NCBI RefSeq assembly: GCF_001447785.1
Contig: NW_015161975.1
Span: forward strand, 227,320-291,319
DNA: 64,000 nt
From: Gekko japonicus
Lineage: Eukaryota
Reading direction: 5' to 3'
The notes under the pieces are model-generated. The model had not been told where the DNA came from, did not search any database, and was given only the letters and a program-made list of their open reading frames with translations. Positions 21,281-64,000 of this stretch are shown here, piece by piece; position 1 is the first letter of the stretch, and each line of letters opens with the position of its first letter. Both the position numbers and the translations under genes were made by a program.

Positions 21281-22414
21281 AAGCGGACTCAGTCGCCAAG
21301 TGGCAGGGTTTGGTGTTCACATGACGCCACCTGGCCCTCCCTGCAGGGGGGGCGGGGACCCCAGGTCAGAAGGCCACGGGTGAATGGGCCAAACCAGGAC
21401 TCTGGTTCCTCCTAAATAAGCCCCGTGGAGGATGGAAGGATTCTAGCCTGCCTTGGGGCTGGGGTGTTGGGGAAGGAGGGGGGGGGGCTGAATCCTGTTT
21501 CCTTGCTGCACCGTTGCCGTCTGGCCTCCTCCCTCTTTGGTTCCTGTTTTTCTACCCGATTGGGAAACAGAAGGATGGAACGGCCTTCCCAGTTTGAGCC
21601 ACAGCACTTCTTCTTGCCGTTGGAGCGACTGCCGCAGAACAGTTTTGGCCTGGAGGAAAACGCAGGGTCCCCCCCACAACCAGGGTTCCCTCTCAGCTGA
21701 GTCAGTGTGAGCCACCTCACCGTTTTTTGGCCCCCGGCTCACACATTTTTTTTGTCTCGGCTCAGGAAGGATGGGGCTCCGGAGCAAACTAATTTATGCA
21801 GCAGCCCAATCGCTGGTTCACAACTTTAATGCCACGAGCTCACAAAGGAGGTTTTTTTGCTCACGAGACTCTGGCCACAACCGGCCAACCCGCCCGGCTC
21901 CTTGGCCCCCCCCCCCCCGCCCCCCCCACCAACCTGCCAGTCCGTCCTGCTGGTCTCCGGAAGAGCAGCTCCAAAGCTCCCTTTTCCAAAGCTGGGCTGG
22001 TGACATTTGGCTCTCCCTTCCCATCCAGTTGGCGTGAGAGGGAGAGGGCCAGGCCTTCCAGAACCGGGTTTCAGGGGCTGCCCACCCACCCCATTCCGCA
22101 GTCTCCAGTGGCCGTCCCCATCACCACAGGCAGCCAGCCGCACTGCCCCCCTGGCAAGGGATTGCTGGCTGGGGGGGGGCACCGCTAGAGCCACATGCAG
22201 TGATGGGTGGGGGGGGGGCATGGTGCAACCTCACAGGGAACTTTGCCAGCTCCTGAATGCCTGCCCCCAAGTGCCTGCCAGTTCCTGGGCAAAGGTCTGC
22301 CCCCCCCCCCCTGGCAGGTCCTCAGGGGAGTGGGGGCATTCTCTGCCGCACCTGGCTGGTGAAGCCGAAATCCTCACCCCGCCCCTGTGGGGCCCCCTCC
22401 CCCCCTGTTGGGAC

Positions 22415-23295
22415 CAGTGTTCCCTCTCAGCTGAGTTTAGTGTGAGCTCACAGCTGTTTAGCCTCTGGCTCATGCATTTCTGCTCAGGAAGGAGGGCTCC
22501 AGTGTTCCCTCTAAGCTGAGTGAGTGTGAGCCAGCTCACAGTTCTTTGCTCAGGAAGGATGGGGGATCCAGAGCAAACGGATGTATGCAGCAGCCCAATC
22601 GCCTGCTCACCACTTTCATGCCCAGGAGCTCACCAAGGATAATTTTTGCTCACAAGAAGCCTCCGCAGCTTAGAGGGAGGGTTGGTCCCCCTGCCCGTGT
22701 GTTCTAAAGGGTCTTCTTCAGCCAGGGTGTGGCGAGTCCAATAGATCCGTCAGCAGGAGCTGAACTCCTGCTGGCGGTCTGCAGCTGGCATGGCCTCAGC
22801 CTGGTGATCTTGAGGGGGGGGGTTGTCTCCCCCTGGGGCTTAGCAGCAGCAGCCGCTCTTCTGAAAGTGCCCTCCCTCTAAGCTGAGTTTAGTGTGAGCC
22901 AGCTCACAGTTCTGTAGCCTCCGGCTCGCACCGTTTTGTCTTTGCTTCGGAAGGAGGGCTCCAGAGCAAGCTGATTTCAGGCAGCAGCCCAATCACTTGC
23001 TCCCACGACTTCCATGCCAAGCGCTCACAAAGCAGAATTTCGGCTCACCAGCAATGTTCCCTCTAAGCTCCGGAGAGTCTGGTGAGCCAAGATTCTACTT
23101 TGTGAGCTCCTGGCACTAAAGCTGTGAGCGAGCGACTTGGCTGCTGCATAACTCAGTTGGCTCTGGAGCCCCGTCCCTTCCTGAGCCAAGACAGAAATGT
23201 GTGAGCTGGAGGCTAAAAGATTGTGAGCTGGCTCACACTCACGCAGCTTAGAGGGAGCCCTGCTCACCAGACTGCACGGCTTAGAGGGAGCCCTG
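22415..23295. mobile_element. Composite MITE-cargo-MITE element with a nested MITE
   Basis: Outer TIRs flanked by perfect TSD GTTGGGAC (22407-22414, 23296-23303); nested MITE 23052-23262 with TSD CTCACCAG. Confidence 0.85.
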
Positions 23296-23569
23296 GTTGG
23301 GACCAGCCCTTTGGACGGACTCGGCGATGGCTGACCATACCCACACCCACCCCTTTAACTGCGCGCCCGTGGGGAGGGAGGGCTCTGCTGAGCCTGCCGC
23401 CGGGCTGCGTCTTCCGCGTTTCGGACCCGCCCGCCCGCTGGCTTGGCAGCCGCCCCTTCGGGTCACGCCGTCCTCCTCACGTGCCCCCGAAGGGGCGGGC
23501 TGCGCCGGGCCGGCTTCCTGGTTGCGGCTCGGGGGGCCCTGCGGGGAAGGGCGGGCGGACGGACGGGCC

Positions 23570-23612
23570 ATGGCCGGGGCGGCTCCGCCGGGCCCGCTGG
23601 AGCTGCTGCTGC
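23570..23612 (+). CDS. GGA2: GGA2 exon 1
   Basis: GCCATGG; [15 protein letters not shown]|gtgagt in a CpG island. Confidence 0.85.
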
Positions 23613-26600
23613 GTGAGTGGGCTGGGGGGGGGGGGGGGGGGGGGGACACGCGCCNNNNNNNNNNNNNNNNNNNNNNNNNNNNNNNNNNNNNNNNNNNNNN
23701 NNNNNNNNNNNNNNNNNNNNNNNNNNNNNNNNNNNNNNNNNNNNNNNNNNNNNNNNNNNNNNNNNNNNNNNNNNNNNNNNNNNNNNNNNNNNNNNNNNNN
23801 NNNNNNNNNNNNNNNNNNNNNNNNNNNNNNNNNNNNNNNNNNNNNNNNNNNNNNNNNNNNNNNGCCCGGGAGTCTGGCGGGCGACGGCTCTGCTTGCGGA
23901 GCGACTGGCACGGAAGGGGTGGGTGAGCCACCCACTTGGAGTTCGCGGGCTCCGGAGCCCCATCCTTCCTTCCTTCCTTCCTAAGGCACACATGCGTGGC
24001 CCCGAGGCTGGGAAACGGTGAGCCCAGCTCAGCACTACACTCGGCTTCGAGGGAACACGGGGGCGCCCAAAGAATACCTGCCACTGCCAGGCTTCCTCCG
24101 GGTCGACTGCTGCAGAAGTTAGTTTGCAGGCTCCTGAAAGCTCCGCCTGCCCAGTGGCTTCCCTGTCATTCAGACCGGCCAAAGTCTCCCAACCAGGGCT
24201 CCTTCCCCCTAAGCTGAGTCAGTGCGAGCCAGCTCGCCGTTCTTTAGCCTCCGGCTCACACATTTCTGTCTCCGCTCCGGAAGGGACGGGGCTCCAGAGC
24301 AAACGAATTGGTGCGGTAGCCAAATGGCTCATAGCTCACCACTTGAATGCCGGCAGCTCACAAAGCAGAATTTTTGCTCACAGGACTCCACAGCTTAGAG
24401 GGAGCATTGTTCCCAACAACCTAGAAATCCCGCCATCCCTCCCAAGACAGGAGTTTTGCTCCAGCCAGGTCTCAATGGGTGTGTGTGTGTGGCTGTGGCT
24501 GTTACAATCATCTTTCCATGAAGCCTACCCTCTTCAGGGGTCATTTCCTAGAAAAAGAGGTGCAGGGGCTCATTAGCATAACTTATTTGCCTATGCCACA
24601 CCCCCTGGCATCACCGGAAGTGTGTCAGAAGGCAACACCCACTGCAACTTACCTGGCTGCTTCTTGCTCCTCCTGGCCTGGGGCTGCTGGGAGCAGGGGG
24701 CGGGGCTTCTTGCATTTGCCCGCCCCCTGGGCTCTTTTTGAGAGCCCAGGGGGCGCATTGCAAGGTGGGCACTGCATTTCCAAGAGGAGGGGAGCCAGCA
24801 GTCCCTGGAGTTGCATGTTGCACGTGCCCGCCCCCTGAGAGCCAGTTTGGTGTAGTGGTTAAGTGCGCGGACTCTAATCTGGGAGAACCGGGTTTGATTC
24901 CCCACTCCTCCGCTTGCACCTGCTGATGTGACCTTGGTTCAGTCACAAGCTCTGGCACAGCTGTCCTTGAAAAAAAGAGCAGTTTCTGTCCGAGCTCTCT
25001 CAGCCCCACCCACCTCACAGGGTGTCTGTTGTGGGGAAGGGAAGGGAAAGGAGTTTGTAAGCCACTCTGAGACTCCAAGTGAAGGGCAAGGGGAATAAAT
25101 CCAATCTCTTCTTCTTCTTCTTCTTCTTTACTGCCGGAGCTCCGCTCCTGTGCGCTCCTGCAGGAAATGACCCATGACCCTCTTACCGATGCACCTCCCT
25201 CCCCATCTCTCCAAGGCCCCTGCAGGGACTGCCAGGGTTAAGAGGCAAACTCCCGCTGCCACCCAAGGGAACCTCAAAGGTGTTTCTCCCGCCAGACCAG
25301 ATGACTCCCGTCCTGCCACTCTCCTCCTCTCTTCAGTGAGGGCCAGCGGCGGCTCTGCTGAAGGAACTGGGCTCAAGCCCACGAAAGGAGGCCTTGGACT
25401 CCCACCCCGTGGCCCCTCCTCCCTTCCATGGGAGACGGTTGACTCCCCTGTCGGGATCCTGACTCCACAAGACCTGTTCCCTTAAAGTTTGCTCCTGACG
25501 CCTTTTGAGGGGGCTGGTTTCCAGTACGGCAAAGCTCCTTGGCTTCCTCGCCCCGATATTTTCACGCCTCTCCGAGAGTCACCCAGGCCAGAGGCCACGG
25601 CTGCTGATGCAGAGCCACTGATGGTGGGCCCTCACCCTCCGTGTCCCTTTGCAGTCCTGCCTTGTTCGTTGCAAAGAACTGTCTCACCAACAGAGGCAGG
25701 CCGTGCCCGGTGCGCCAGATGGCCGTCCCTCCCAGCTTCAGGGGTGACGGGAAACGCTTCTGTCTACAGCGCTTCAGACATGGGTCCATGCCTTGCACCA
25801 AACAAAAAAACCCCAGTAATGTCTCTGTTCTTCTTCTTCTTCTTCTTCTTTTTTTTTTTTTTGGTAATTTTATTGAACACAGTAACAGTTGTACAACAAA
25901 AGAAAAACGGAACAGGCATACAATACATAACACAAAATACGGTTCGAACTGACATATTCAGAAAGCAGAAATATAATTACTTATTGTACAACGCAGTACT
26001 AAAAATGCGTCAGAAAGTTTTTTGGTTTTTAGTGTGTCGCAGCTTATGGAACCGAAATTACCATAAGAATAACAGAACGAATGTCTTAGAATGTGGCAGA
26101 GTAGTAAGGTAATAACAAATCTAAACATTTTGACAGGGGACTTTAAAAGAGTACAACCGAGCGGTTAGTAATGTTTGGTTCTGACTCCTCAGAAGTTAAT
26201 TATATTCAATAGACATTACTTATTTTTTTAATTTCGGTTTTGCCTAACCCCCTCCTGCCTCCTGCCAGAGTGGAATTCAGGATTGCACATGAACTGTCCG
26301 CATTACCTGACATTGTCCTGGCAAAGGAGCAAGCCAGGCCGACCCACTGGAGGAACATCTGTGCGCGTGAGCTCTCCCCGTCCAGGAAGCATCTGGCAGT
26401 GCTCTGCAGCCCTGGGCCGCTGCTGAGGTTCTGAGAGTTCTCCAGGGCCCCTCTGCTTCCAGAAGGAACACCCCCCTCCCCGGGACTTTTTGCGGGCAGG
26501 CTGTGCCTCCGCTGGCAGAGGATTTCCCACTCCCGCAGTCTGGATAGGCTCCCTTGGCATCCTTCTCTCTTCCGAGGCTGTTTTGGGGCAGGAGGGCGGC

Positions 26601-29600: not shown

Positions 29601-32600
29601 CCTTATCCCACCCACTTATCAGCTGTTGGTGTGACCTTGGGTCAGTCACAAGTTCTCTCGGAGCTGTTCTCCCTCAATGGCGGTCCTCGAGAGAGCTCTC
29701 TCAGCCCCGCCTACCTCACAGGCAATGCTCCCTCAAAGCTGTGGAGTCTTGTGAGCAAAAAATTCTACTTTGTGAGCCATTGGTATTAAAGTTGGGAGCG
29801 AGTGATTTGGCTACTGCATAAATTAGTTTGCTTCTGGAGCCCCATCCTTCCTGAGCAAAGACAAAAATCGGGGAGCCAGGGGCTAAAAAATTGTGAGCTA
29901 GCTCACACTAACTCAGCTTAGAGGGAACACTGCTCACAGGGCGTCTGCTGTGGGGAGGGGAAGGGAAAGGAGTTTGTAAGCAGCTCTGAGACTCCTTCGG
30001 GTAGTGAAGGGCCATGTACAAGTCCAATTTCTTCTTCTTTCCTGCCACTGAGTGTATTCTAATCTGGGAGAACCAGGTCTGATTCCCCACTCCTCCTCCA
30101 CGTGCAGCTGCTGGTGTGACCTTGGGTCAGTCACAAGTTATCTCAGAGCTGTTCTCTCTCTCAGAGACAGTCCTCGAGAGAGCTCTCTCAGCCCCACCTG
30201 CCTCACAGGGTGTCTGTTGTGGGGAGGGGAAGGGAAAGGAGACTGTAGGCCGCTCTGAGACTCCTTCGGGTAGTGAAGGGCCATGGGGTATAAATCCAAT
30301 TTCTTCTTCCTCCGCTTCCCAGGAATTGTGAGGCAGGACCCCAAACTCCTGGAAGACAGAATTGTGCCACCCCCTCCGAGACCGGCAGGCTCCATTTTTG
30401 ATGCTGAGGATGAGAAATCCCAGGTAAGCCCTGGGGACCAAGCCTGCGGGATGTGGCAGAAGCCGCCCCCCCCAAAAAAAACCTTCCGGGGCTCTGCAGG
30501 GGTTATCAACTTTGGCTATTCCACACAGATCTGCCTCGCTGGTGGCACCGTTCAGGGCTTGCTCATGTTGCGGCTCACAGAGCAGAGCTGGAAAAGCCCA
30601 ACAAAGGTTTTAAGTGGTTCTGATTAAGAACATCAGAGAGAAGCCAATGTTGGCTGAGGCCAATGGCCCCTCCAGTCCAACACTCTGTGTCACACAGGGG
30701 CCAAAAATACCAGGTGCCATCAGGAGGTCCAGCAGTGGGGCCACCCAGGACACTAGGAGCCCCCCCACCTCTTGCCCCCCCTCCAAGCACCAAGAAGACA
30801 GAGCATCACTTGCCCCAGACCGAGAGTTCCTATAAGAACATCAGAGAAGCCAGTGTTGTATCAGGCCAGTGGCACATCCAGTCCAACACTCTGAGTCACA
30901 CAGTGGCCAAAACCCAGGTGCCATCAGAAGGCCAGAACTCCAGAATCCCTCCCACTGTTGCCGCCGAAGCACCAAGAATACAGAGCATCACTGCCCCAAA
31001 CATAGTGTTCCATCTAGACCTCATGGCTAATGTCTGCTAGTGGACCTCTGCTCCACATGTTTATCCAATCCCCCCTTGAAGCTTTCTCTGCTTGTAGCCA
31101 CCATGACTTCCTGCAGCAGTGAACTTTACATGTTAATTACTCTTTGCGTGAAGAAGTGCTTCCTTTTATCTGTTCTAAGCCTGCTCATAAATTTCACTGA
31201 GTGTCCACAAGTTCTTGTATTGTGAGAAAGGGAGAAAAGTACTCCTTTCTCTACCTTCTCTATTCCATGCATAATTTGTTAACCTCTGTCATTATCACCT
31301 TTCCATTGTTGTTTCTCCAAGCTAAAAAGTCCTAACCTGTTTAACATTTCTTCATAGGGAAGATGTTCCATCCCCTTAATCATTTTAGTTCTCCTTTTTT
31401 GCACCTTTTCCAATGTTATACCTTTTTTGAGGTGCAGTGACCAGAACTGTACACAGTATTTCAAATGACGGCTGCACCATCGATCTATACAGGGGCATTA
31501 TGATACTGGCTGATTTGTTTTCAGTGCCCTTCCTGGTAATCCCCAGCATAGCATTTACTTTTTTTTATTCTCCTCCTTTTCTCTTATGTGTTATCCATTG
31601 TCTGTCATTCCAAGTGGGCACTGTGGTTGCATTTAGGTTGGACTATAACTTTGCCGCCTCCTCCTGTGGCAGTGAGTTCCACGTGTTGGTCACTCTTTGG
31701 GCGAAGAAGGACTTCCTTTTATCCGTCCTAACCCGTCTGTGGTGCTTTGGTTTGAGGGGTGGTTTTGTCCTAATGCCCGGGGAGTCTGAGCGTGTGAAGC
31801 TGCCCTCCAGCGAGGGAGGCTCTAGGGAACCTCAGGCCGGGCGGGGCCTCTCCTGCTCCTGCTGGGGTGGCACGGGGGCAGGACCTGCCCGCAAGGCAGG
31901 CAGGCAGGCAGGCAGACACTTCCTGATCCTGTCACGTCCTAGAAACGCAGAGCTGGGAGGGGTCCCAAAGGGTCATCTAGCCCCCAATCCCCCAGTGACC
32001 CCCGCTGTGTGCCCAGAAGAAGGCAAAACTTCTCCCTGGGCCAGTCTTGCTGACCCCAGAGTGGCGATCGGCATTTCCCTGGGCGCGTAAGAAAGGGGCA
32101 CGAGAACTAAGCCCTGCCCTCCCTTCTCCTGATCTGCCCAAGTTCACAGAATCTGCACACGGCTGTCAGACGGCCACCCAGCCTCTGCTTGAAAATCTCC
32201 AAAGAAGGAGAGCCCACCACCTCCTCCTCCTGAGGAAGCCTGTTCCGCTGAGGAACCCCTTTGACTGTCAGGAAGCTCTCTAATGTTTAGCTGAAAACTC
32301 TTCTGGTTGGATTTCAACTCGTTGGTTCCGGTCTGGCCTTCCGGGGCCACAGGAAGCCACTCTGCTTCCTCCTCTCGCTGATAAATGTTTTGGGGACCTT
32401 TGGCCCTTGGGGGGGCCGGAGTGGGGCCACGCCCCTGTCTTCTCCCCCATGGCCCCGGGCTCACCCCGCCTCCCTCTCTGCCGCAGATGCTGGTGAGGCT
32501 CCTCCAGAGCAAGGACCCGGAAGACCTGCGGGCTGCGAACCGGCTGATCAAGGGGCTGATCAAAGAGGTGGGCGTCTCCCTCGGAGGCCGTCTCGCCCAG

Positions 32601-35600: not shown

Positions 35601-38600
35601 GGCCTGTACAAGCAGGTGGTGGGCACCTGCCAGAACCCTGCAGCTGGGGCTGTCGATGCCCCAGGTGACACTGATCCGCTCGTCATTTCTAGAGTGTCTC
35701 CCTTCGCCTTGGCCATGAAAACAACCAGGGCTAAGACTGCAGCTTCAGAAAATTAACCTTTTCATGATTAACCGGGTTTAACAGCATGTTGTACTGTGTG
35801 TAAATTATGATTTTAGTGTACTGTTATAGATTGTTTTAGAGGCATTGTTTTATTGGTTTTAATGTTGTAAGCCGCCCTGAGCCGCTTCGGCGGGAGGGTG
35901 GGAGAAAAATCAAATAAATAATAAATAAATAATAATAATTGCTTCCCCTCCTAACAGCATTCCGTGCGCCTCGGCGTTTAGTCATGCCGGCCACATGACC
36001 ACGGAGAAGTCTCCGGACAGCACTGGCTCTTCGGCTTGGAAACGGAGATGAGCACCGCAACCCTAGAGTCGGATTCGACTGGCTTTCGAGCAAGGGAAAT
36101 CTTCACCTTTACCTATATGCAGTGCCTCAGTCCCAGAGGACATTCTTCACTTTATATTATTCGGTCCTATGTATACAGCAGTTAGGTCTCAATTTCTTGA
36201 TAATCTGCTAATAGGACAAAAAAAATTATATTGACAAGCTGGTCTTCTTATTAGCTGACACTGTTCTGCTCAGAAAATTAACCTTTTCATGACTAACCGG
36301 GTTTATTTTTCTCCCCAATTTTATCGTTTATAACATTAATAGCTGGTCCATATCTGTGTGCAAATTCTTTTAATCGCTGTTTTATCTATGTACGATTAGA
36401 ATTATATATATCCTCTTTTTTTTTTGTATTGTGACGGGCCAGCCTTTGGCATTATACACAATAAAACCCTGGACTTATTTCTGGGCAAAGCTGGGGTCGA
36501 GAGGAGGCCCTTTGCTAAGGCAGAGCAGCGAGCGAGAGAGCCGGTGTCGATGGGCACGGCTTCTTGCCAAGACCACAGAGGTGGGCTGCCTTCTGTTTCT
36601 TCCTCTTCCTCCTGGGCCTTGCCCCCTGGCCTCTCTCTCTCCCCGACATCTGGCTTTCTTCCAGCAGCCCCCCAGCCCCCTCCAGACAGTGCCGGGACCC
36701 CCTCGCTCATCGACTTCTCCGAGCTGGACTCTGCCTTCGGCACTCCCGGGTCCTTCCAAGGAAAGGCCAAGAGCAAGCCTTCTTCCTCCTCCTCCTCCTC
36801 CACTCACTCCCTGGATGAAGAGCTGGTATCCTTAGGTCAGTGGCGGGGGCGGGGGGGGAGTGTTCCTGCTAAACTGGGTGAGTGTGAGCTAGGTCACAGT
36901 TCTTTAGCCTCCGGCTCACACATTTTTTTTGTCTCAGCTCAGGAAGGATGGCTCCAGGGCAAATTCATTTATGCAGCAGCCGAATCGCTCGCTCACAAGT
37001 ACTTTAAGGCCAGTAGCTCACAAAGCAGGATTTTTGCTCACAAGACTCCACAGCTTAGAGGGAGCATTGCTCACAGGCAGTGTTCCCTCTAAACAGTGTG
37101 AGCCAGCTCACCGTTTTTAAGCCTCCGGCTCACACATTCTTGTCTCCGCTCAGGAAGGAAGGATGGGGCTCCAGAGCAAACTCATTGATGCAGGAGCCCT
37201 ATCGCTCGCTCACAAGTACTTTAACGCCAGTGTAGCTCACAAAGCAGGATTTTTGCTCACAGGACTCCACAGCCTAGAGGGAGGCATTGCCTGGGGCACC
37301 TGAGCCTGGCGACCGGGCATCCCTTGGCGCTGCTTCCTGCGGGCGAGGAGGGCAGGGGAGAGTCCAGCAGCCGTGGCGCGTGTAAGAACAGGCCCCCGCC
37401 AGGCACCAGGGCTGCGGCAGTGCCCAGTTAAGTGGGCACAAGTTCTGCCAGGACTCCTCTGTGTGGGGGTGGGGGTGGGTTCCAATCCACCCCTCTTGGG
37501 GGGCAAGGAAAAGGGAACCTGGGCGTGAGGTGGGGGCTTCTTTGGACCCTTCTGCGTGGGNNNNNNNNNNNNNNNNNNNNNNNNNNNNNNNNNNNNNNNN
37601 NNNNNNNNNNNNNNNNNNNNNNNNNNNNNNNNNNNNNNNNNNNNNNNNNNNNNNNNNNNNNNNNNNNNNNNNNNNNNNNNNNNNNNNNNNNNNNNNNNNN
37701 NNNNNNNNNNNNNNNNNNNNNNNNNNNNNNNNNNNNNNNNNNNNNNNNNNNNNNNNNNNNNNNNNNNNNNNNNNNNNNNNNNNNNNNNNNNNNNNNNNNN
37801 NNNNNNNNNNNNNNNNNNNNNNNNNNNNNNNNNNNNNNNNNNNNNNNNNNNNNNNNNNNNNNNNNNNNNNNNNNNNNNNNNNNNNNNNNNNNNNNNNNNN
37901 NNNNNNNNNNNNNNNNNNNNNNNNNNNNNNNNNNNNNNNNNNNNNNNNNNNNNNNNNNNNNNNNNNNNNNNNNNNNNNNNNNNNNNNNNNNNNNNNNNNN
38001 GGGCCGTGGGTGGGCGGGAGAGAGCTGGGGGAGTCCGGGACGGAGCGGCAGGGAAGGGCCCCCCCCCGGCTGTAAGCAGAGAAGCCGCCTCCAGCCTCCT
38101 CGCTCTCTCTCTCTCTCTGCCAGGTCTTCCCAACAGCCCTGCGAGGGAGGCTGCCTTCTCCTGTGGGCTCCCGCAAGTGACCCCTCCGTCACCCTCCTGC
38201 CCAGCAAACCTCCTAGCTAATCTTTTCATCCCTCTGGAATCTGTCGTGCTGAGTAAGTGCCGGGGATTTCAGGCTTTCCTTCGGTGGTGGTGGTGGGGTT
38301 GTTGCCGGGCAATGGTGTTGCTGGGAAGGGGGCGCCAGGGGCCGTCTCCCCCCCCTTCCTCGTGCCTCTCCTCCCTGCCGACAGCTGCCTTTCCCGTTCT
38401 TTTCCCCGGCAGGCCCGATTCCCCCGGTCACCGTCTACGAGCGGAACGGCCTTAAGGCCCTGCTGCACTTCGCCAGGGACCCGGTGCCCGGCCAGCTGGC
38501 TGCCCGCGTGATGGTCCTCTCTCTCCTGAGCACGTCTCCTCAGCCGACCCAGCAGGTGGTGTTTCAGGCCGCGGTGCCAAAGGTGAGTGGCTGGAAGGGG

Positions 38601-44944: not shown

Positions 44945-64000
<19,056 letters not shown>

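Follow-up and report, generated by a model that had tools for sequence, protein, structure and literature searches.

In animals, 370 Pack-TIRs, in which host DNA lies between the terminal inverted repeats (TIRs) of a transposon, were reported from 100 genomes and 208 of them were hAT elements (Tan et al., 2021; PMC8277862). Gap filling was proposed as the origin of most of the single-copy Pack-TIRs in animals; these were mostly hAT elements, showed a bias toward parents in cis and contained internal breakpoints with microhomology (PMC8277862). In Arabidopsis, a hybrid model of Pack-CACTA formation was put forward, in which chromosomal DNA between neighbouring elements is captured (Catoni et al., 2019; PMC6379663). 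In maize, two Ac/Ds elements are known to transpose as one (Huang and Dooner, 2008, cited in PMC3744419). In our study, a 64,000-nucleotide stretch of Gekko japonicus DNA (contig NW_015161975.1, positions 227,320 to 291,319; hereafter the window, to which all coordinates refer) was found to contain a block of miniature inverted-repeat transposable elements (MITEs) upstream of GGA2. The block encloses a non-MITE spacer, and a second copy of this spacer was present in intron 7 of COG7. A first-pass annotation of the window had explained the block as two neighbouring MITEs that were mobilised together with the intronic DNA between them. The evidence somewhat favours a repair-type copying of DNA from COG7 over such a joint jump of two MITEs.

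The unit upstream of GGA2 was 881 bp long (22415-23295) and was bounded on both sides by a perfect repeat of the octamer GTTGGGAC, the left copy abutting CAGTGTTCCCTC... and the right copy abutting ...GAGGGAGCCCTG. An 8-bp target-site duplication (TSD) outside the outermost TIRs had been described in the first-pass annotation, and it was confirmed. Within the unit the spacer lies between a left MITE (L) and a right MITE (R), whose inner flanks (GTCCCCCT and CTCTTCTG) matched nothing at that locus; a TSD was found at the outer termini only. The data support a block that behaves as a single TSD-bounded insertion, the inner MITE ends being without TSDs. Non-transposon DNA was found between TIR-bearing termini inside the GTTGGGAC-bounded block, as in a Pack-TIR.

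The MITEs were about 210 bp long, and the 19-bp TIR CAGTGYTCCCTCTAAGCTG was found at both ends of about 20 copies. Single copies contained TSDs of 8 bp, which matched in all eight positions at 29723-29932 and around the nested MITE at 23052-23262, and in seven of the eight at 573, 24195, 40058 and 62226. The target consensus of hAT elements is nTnnnnAn; in the flanks read in the window, the second TSD position was T in 10 of 12 and the seventh was A in 9 of 12. The assignment of these MITEs to the hAT type, already made in the first-pass annotation, is supported by the 8-bp TSDs, the target consensus and the short TIRs, which start with CAG/TAG as is expected of hAT elements. The copy number of the family is on the order of 10^4. 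No autonomous element with a cognate hAT transposase was found in the 64-kb window.

A BLAST search of the 897-bp interval against the window gave MITE matches at about 25 places, and the spacer matched at one other place only, as a 482-column alignment of 22613-23051 with 60663-61133. The recurrence of the spacer at 60731-60945 between two MITEs of the same family, as first annotated, was also seen from a spacer 34-mer, which occurred exactly twice in the window against no occurrence in 100 shuffles. The two spacers were about 92% identical. Depth was read from four whole-genome shotgun raw-read runs of the same species (about 1.7-1.9 Gb per run), matched to 21880-23650 at 80% likeness. Over the four runs the spacer bins (22720-22839) summed to 7.6x, compared with 3.15x for eleven unique flank bins, whereas the MITE bins reached up to about 42,000x in the same reads. 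The ratio of about 2.5 was based on about 8 spacer reads over 120 bp and about 18 reads over 660 bp of unique flank, and its Poisson 95% range was 1.1-4.9 copies. The spacer is present about twice per genome, the low copy number that the first-pass annotation had called for; at about 2.5 times the unique depth, it is therefore not the inside of a multi-copy element. The view that the spacer is an internal part of a longer multi-copy transposon family, of which both loci are ordinary copies, had been named in the first-pass annotation as a refutation of its model; it found no support in our analysis and is contradicted by the spacer depth, as against a thousands-fold depth on the MITE parts, and by the presence of only two spacer copies in the window. 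We regard it as extremely improbable. A 28-mer from the spacer gave no match in a metagenome scan. The spacer had no match in Pfam or in Rfam (the latter run on both loci), and the only Rfam matches at the two loci were sub-threshold, miRNA-like ones on the hairpin of the R MITE and the nested MITE.

The extent of co-derivation was examined by removing the later insertions, aligning the two composites and counting the mismatches in each segment. The mismatch between the loci was 14.9% in the L body and 2.6% in the L tail (its last 42 bp), followed by 3.7% in the first half of the spacer and 12.9%, with six gap events, in the second half; it was 6.2% in the R head (the first 65 bp), 22.7% in the R body and 8% at the R end. 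Together, the L tail, spacer and R head contained 19 mismatches in 271 columns (7.0%), compared with 48 in 260 columns (18.5%) in the MITE bodies (Fisher p = 7e-5). The family background consisted of about 20 copies, all within the window, with a pairwise identity of 83.2 +/- 2.8% and a mean mismatch of 16.8% between unrelated pairs. At the common subfamily-polymorphic columns the L bodies differed in 10 of 17 and the R body and end in 8 of 18, where unrelated pairs differ in 45%; if these parts were co-derived, with 10% change per lineage, the probability would be 2e-6 for the L bodies and 1e-4 for the R body and end. Within the tract none of the five such columns of the R head and neither of the two in the L tail differed. 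The R head at GGA2 (to about 22927) was 93% identical to the COG7 R MITE, and rare variants found in no other window copy were common to both loci, namely GGGAGGGTTG, AAGCCTCC and the odd R TIR AGTGCC[C/T]TCCC.

The clearly shared DNA is about 22645-22927. Its ends lie inside the MITEs, 42 and 65 bp from the spacer; they are symmetrical about the spacer and fall in conserved MITE stretches (TTTTTGCTCAC near 22645 and TAGCCTCCGGCTC near 22920). In the outer MITE bodies, the ends with the outer TIRs included, the likeness does not exceed that of family members taken at random. The same two elements, co-derived over their full length at donor and target as in a macrotransposon, were not found at these two loci; only the inner 42 bp of L and 65 bp of R were co-derived with the COG7 MITEs. 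The first-pass claim that the same two MITEs were mobilised together is not supported on this point.

On the COG7 side, the outer flanks GTCCCTGC (60233-60240) and TGTGATGC (61161-61168) differ and there is no outer TSD. The right flank of the L MITE, GTCCCCCTGC (60731-60740), is a near-copy of its left flank GTCCCTGC, and it reaches into the spacer; GTCCCTGC is matched exactly, or with a gap of 1-2 nt, at a fraction of 4.5e-4 of the window positions. Both features agree with the first-pass description. The GGA2-side spacer also begins with GTCCCCCTGC, a copy of the target octamer of the COG7 L MITE. Of the two copies of this octamer, the right one is part of the tract, whereas the left one is found beyond the tract and at COG7 alone; the tract therefore originated at COG7, and GGA2 received the copy. 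The near-TSD running into the shared stretch points to COG7 intron 7 as the parent of the spacer, as had been proposed. The opposite arrangement, in which the spacer is native to the region upstream of GGA2, or the MITEs there were inserted independently, with a chance match of GTTGGGAC and a derived copy at COG7, gains from the target choice of the family. This choice is strongly biased to GTTGG[A/G]AC, and two unrelated copies had the identical flank GTTGGAAC; an 8/8 flank match of unrelated ends is therefore expected by chance at about 1%, and not at 1e-5. Independent insertions would, however, have left a TSD for each MITE, and the inner flanks at GGA2 are unmatched; for the beginning of the shared spacer, a match exists in the left flank of the COG7 L MITE but in nothing at GGA2. 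On these grounds an origin at GGA2 is very improbable.

We hold with middling confidence that the shared tract reached GGA2 as a homology-guided copy of COG7 DNA ("gap filling"), made into MITEs that were resident there beforehand. In the parental COG7 intron 7, a unique sequence of about 215 bp would have come to lie between two independently inserted MITEs. Upstream of GGA2, a resident block with the TSD GTTGGGAC and at least two different MITEs would have existed before the copying, formed either by two insertions at the same preferred octamer or by the joint insertion of a pair. Where these two MITEs meet, or close to that point, the DNA would have been broken, and the COG7 locus, 38 kb distant in cis, would have served as the template for the repair, the broken ends pairing with that locus through MITE homology. 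The terminal ~42 bp of the COG7 L MITE would then have been copied by repair synthesis together with the target-site copy, the spacer and the initial ~65 bp of the R MITE, a process that amounts to gap filling guided by homology or to ectopic gene conversion. The outcome would resemble a compound transposon with cargo, the cargo having arrived without transposition. What we infer from the two sequences is the state of GGA2 before the copying, the occurrence of a break and the way in which it was repaired. The outer TSD means that the outermost MITE ends at GGA2 entered by transposition at one octamer; it does not imply that the spacer arrived with them.

One repair event would explain the limits of the tract, the family-level divergence outside it, the location in cis and the two-copy status. 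Tract ends inside homologous repeats on both sides are a prediction of homology-directed copying. As in gap-filled Pack-TIRs, the parent was found in cis (38 kb away, on one contig), and the breakpoints were internal to the transposon and lay in homology. The distance of the window MITEs from their consensus was 10.8% on average and 6.9% at the minimum, whereas the shared tract split at ~2-3.5% per lineage; the split is thus younger than the window MITEs, and the copying may postdate most of the transposition.

The perfect 8-bp TSD beyond the outermost TIRs, and the lack of TSDs at the inner ends, are explained differently by compound (macro)transposition, which we consider possible but rather unlikely. 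The hAT transposase would have used the outer ends of the COG7 pair and moved L, spacer and R to GTTGGGAC, a local hop of 38 kb to the region upstream of GGA2, and the donor would have been restored from the sister chromatid. Later events would be needed at both loci. At GGA2 the L body would have been exchanged through a nested insertion and recombination, or through a template switch, with the partial duplicate at 22415-22498 as a remnant; at COG7 the R MITE would have recombined with a downstream MITE and so acquired another body and lost its TSD. In a variant of this account the transposition is old and the centre was refreshed later by interlocus gene conversion. The order of full MITE, spacer and full MITE is the same at both loci, the near-TSD of the COG7 L MITE is consistent with a donor, and the rare CACGG and GAGCC variants are common to the R ends. 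The rearranged L MITE at GGA2 and the R MITE without TSD at COG7 may be read as hints of the two later events. A second pair, at 51612-52056, had outer flanks matching in 7 of 8 positions and unrelated inner flanks, its MITEs being 85.9% alike, and in maize, hAT transposition is known to employ ends from two neighbouring elements (PMC3744419).

Against such a jump stands the fact that the outer MITE parts, with the very ends that the transposase would use, were not co-derived (P = 2e-6 and 1e-4). Two independent replacements at two loci would have to imitate one conversion tract by coincidence. The shared tract (~7% pairwise) is far younger than any window MITE, and a late transposase burst, of which there is no trace in the window, would be needed. 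Alternative transposition of maize Ac/Ds has reportedly been studied by Zhang, Peterson and co-workers. Two TSD-bounded MITE pairs were found in the 64 kb. In our estimate it is doubtful that compound (macro)transposition by two MITEs occurs naturally and repeatedly in the gecko's 10^4-copy hAT MITE family; if it did, the GGA2 block would represent this mode in a vertebrate, both donor and target being visible, and repeat-mediated exchange would have blurred the picture afterwards. Taken as a whole, the first-pass interpretation was retained for the low-copy spacer, the single TSD-bounded insertion and the COG7 parent, and was not supported for the joint mobilisation of the MITE pair.

Several points weigh against homology-guided copying. 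It requires that two MITEs with identical outer flanks already formed a block at GGA2, a state that is assumed, although such a block is plausible given the target preference and the pair of MITEs 8 bp apart at 36858-37289. A single resident MITE does not fit, as the junctions lie at MITE positions ~165 (left) and ~65 (right) and the L and R bodies are 78.5% alike; for the same likeness, and for a junction order of 165/65 that misfits a single break, one resident MITE with one complex template switch was rejected. Homologous repair is normally suppressed between sequences as diverged as the members of this family (~17%). The second half of the spacer was more diverged than the first (p 0.01-0.05), which fits an older duplication with later patchy conversion somewhat better. 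The TSD-bounded pair at 51612-52056 shows that such pairs recur, and compound transposition is the simplest explanation there. A TSD that still matches in all eight positions suggests that the integration was fairly recent. If the tract was copied, the absence of a TSD at the COG7 R MITE and the partially duplicated MITE at 22415-22498 have to be taken as unrelated accidents.

Table 1. Features of the block upstream of GGA2, of the COG7 intron 7 locus and of the adjoining exons (window coordinates).
Feature	Position	Strand	Remarks
Shared stretch (L tail, spacer, R head)	22645-22927 (~283 bp)	+	COG7 side about 60690-61007
Outer TSD, left copy GTTGGGAC	22407-22414		8/8 identical to 23296-23303
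Partial MITE (first ~84-97 bp of family consensus), with outer left TIR CAGTGTTCCCTCTCAGCTG	22415-22498	+	
GGA2-side L MITE, with 31-bp internal deletion	22499-22686	+	Body 22499-22644, tail 22645-22686
Spacer (cargo), non-MITE, 179 bp	22687-22865	+	2 window copies; ~2.5x unique depth
GGA2-side R MITE, 5' part	22866-23051	+	Head to ~22927; body from 22928
Nested MITE, inverted within R MITE	23052-23262	-	Own perfect 8-bp TSD
GGA2-side R MITE, 3' end, including second CTCACCAG; outer right TIR ...GGCTTAGAGGGAGCCCTG	23263-23295	+	
Outer TSD, right copy GTTGGGAC	23296-23303		Flank comparison
Putative GGA2 start codon and first coding exon, then GT donor	23571-23612	+	Sequence reading only
COG7 exon 7	59318-59539	+	Pfam COG7 positions 275-341
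Left flank of COG7-side L MITE GTCCCTGC, left copy of near-TSD	60233-60240		
COG7-side L MITE	60241-60730	+	60241-60385 plus 60663-60730, split by a short interspersed nuclear element (SINE)
Parental spacer, COG7 intron 7, 215 bp	60731-60945	+	Begins GTCCCCCTGC, ends GTCCCTGA (60937-60944)
COG7-side R MITE, complete, without TSD	60946-61160	+	Right flank TGTGATGC
COG7 exon 8	61516-61641	+	Pfam COG7 positions 346-387

The features of both loci are given in Table 1. The partial MITE at 22415-22498 was found to be a partial tandem duplicate with the adjoining L MITE, to which it is joined by a CCAG microhomology; its top match was the start of the neighbouring MITE (92.9% over 56 columns), and it was 8.4% from the consensus. 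No tandem array was found at the GGA2 block with TRF. The same type of partial 5' duplication was present at 46136-46748, where the first 99 bp of the MITE are repeated in tandem (period 99, 5.1 copies, 95% alike) and lead into a full MITE. The nested MITE carries the TSD CTCACCAG at 23044-23051 and 23263-23270 and was not present in the COG7 copy. Its 12.5% divergence from the consensus was considered as a minimum age of the block and then dropped, as old cut-and-paste elements can be remobilised. The GGA2-side R body (22928-23051) was 22% from the consensus, twice the family mean of 10.8%; it has gained several CpGs and adjoins the GGA2 CpG island.

In the COG7 intron, the L MITE contained a tRNA-like SINE (GGTTAAGTG...GGGTTTGATTCCC) at 60386-60662, many copies of which were scattered across the window; it received no tRNA call from ARAGORN. 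Three near-copies of one octamer were observed at this locus: GTCCCTGC and GTCCCCCTGC border L on the left and on the right, respectively, and GTCCCTGA borders R on the left. The GTCCCTGA copy is identical to the L target octamer in 7 of 8 positions and leaves the parental spacer bracketed by the target of L; the GGA2 copy is without this stretch owing to an 18-bp gap. An origin of the spacer by tandem duplication within COG7 intron 7 was rejected, as the similarity of the flanks to the spacer was not above that of shuffled controls.

Further arrangements of the MITE family were observed in the window. The two MITEs of the pair at 51612-52056 were 29 bp apart and alike at the family level; the outer flanks were GTTGGAAC and GTTGGAAT, and the 29-bp spacer had no other copy in the window and was unrelated to the COG7-type spacer. 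At 36858-37289, two MITEs were exactly 8 bp apart, with CTCACAGG between them. This octamer, which lies within a SINE, was also the TSD or flank of three further MITE copies (28874, 29723-29932 and 40293) and marks an insertion hot spot. The MITE at 21681-21872 had no right TIR (its end being ...GAGACTCT), and its flanks CCCACAAC and GCCACAAC matched in 7 of 8 positions; it seems to be a terminal deletion that spared the TSD. Local duplications that include a MITE and its flanks were found at 10630-10841/11095-11308 and at 28430-28931/29285-29818. They contained identical flanks (GGGTTGCATC and CTTG[CT]TATGG) and repeated strings of open reading frames. Some were located beside runs of N. Either true tandem duplication or a repeat in the assembly may account for them.

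The exons were searched singly, by reference. Exons for the VHS and GGA_N-GAT domains were found at 27.1-32.7 kb and those of COG7 at 59.3-63.3 kb (Pfam). The VHS exon scored 131 bits against human GGA2, compared with 107 for GGA1 and 104 for GGA3. Among the nearest COG7 proteins, that of Gekko kuhli was 94.9% identical over ten exons (44945-63326), and those of Paroedura picta and Eublepharis macularius were 89.7% and 89.3% identical over the window exons, respectively. Mapping of the Gekko kuhli exons placed the COG7-side composite between exon 7 and exon 8, in the intron and at the 38-kb distance that had first been annotated. The putative GGA2 ATG (23571), in a good context, lies 268 bp past the right TSD, where about 275 bp had been given, and inside a CpG island (23304-23654; GC 0.77, CpG observed/expected 0.77). 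The cargo is intronic and differs from the coding gene fragments of plant Pack-MULE and Pack-CACTA elements.

The GGA2 case is a real but ordinary transposon-associated DNA duplication, as host DNA between hAT termini is already known in animals. Hundreds of animal Pack-hAT elements have been described, and the biological surprise is therefore modest. It is distinctive in its filler, which includes the inner ends of both parental MITEs and so gives the block the look of a compound transposon. About 880 bp of repeat-flanked foreign DNA was found within 270 bp of the putative start codon of a trafficking housekeeping gene, at the edge of a CpG island; no function of the copied stretch is indicated. 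Parent and daughter form a clean pair and offer a worked example for separating two routes of transposon-associated duplication. An outer TSD alone is no proof of transposed cargo, and the test is the co-derivation of the flanking elements.

Ectopic gene conversion and recombination are known between dispersed repeats, such as the Alu-mediated events in primates, and the usual result of the exchange is homogenisation or deletion. The gecko tract is similar in that its limits lie inside homologous repeats, the unique DNA between them is carried along and the partner is in cis; it is less usual for such an event to place ~180 bp of unique sequence inside a block of MITEs. In the Pack-CACTA model the cargo likewise comes from between two close, directly oriented non-autonomous elements, but the inner TIRs are lost by aberrant excision and one hybrid element results, whereas the gecko block keeps both inner TIRs (PMC6379663). 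The superfamily there is CACTA, with a 3-bp TSD, and the gecko elements are of the hAT type. In maize Ac/Ds macrotransposition (PMC3744419), two nearby hAT elements in direct orientation move as one to a linked target with an 8-bp TSD at the outer ends only, features that the gecko block has in common. There the same two elements are found at donor and target, whereas the outer MITE parts in the gecko, a case known from sequence alone, were not co-derived.

The gap-filled Pack-TIRs of PMC8277862 are the remaining comparison. In the gecko the filler brings the inner ends and TIRs of two parental MITEs and results in two complete MITEs, and not in one element with an insert as in those cases. 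The homology at the gecko junctions extends over tens of bases of repeat, compared with a median microhomology of 2 bp (PMC8277862), and the gecko parent is 38 kb away, whereas most of the published cases lie at less than 15 kb (PMC8277862). The gecko cargo is intronic and not exonic. The two are alike in the presence of host DNA between TIR termini, a parent on the same chromosome, one derived copy, the hAT superfamily, and breakpoints that lie inside the transposon, in homology (PMC8277862).

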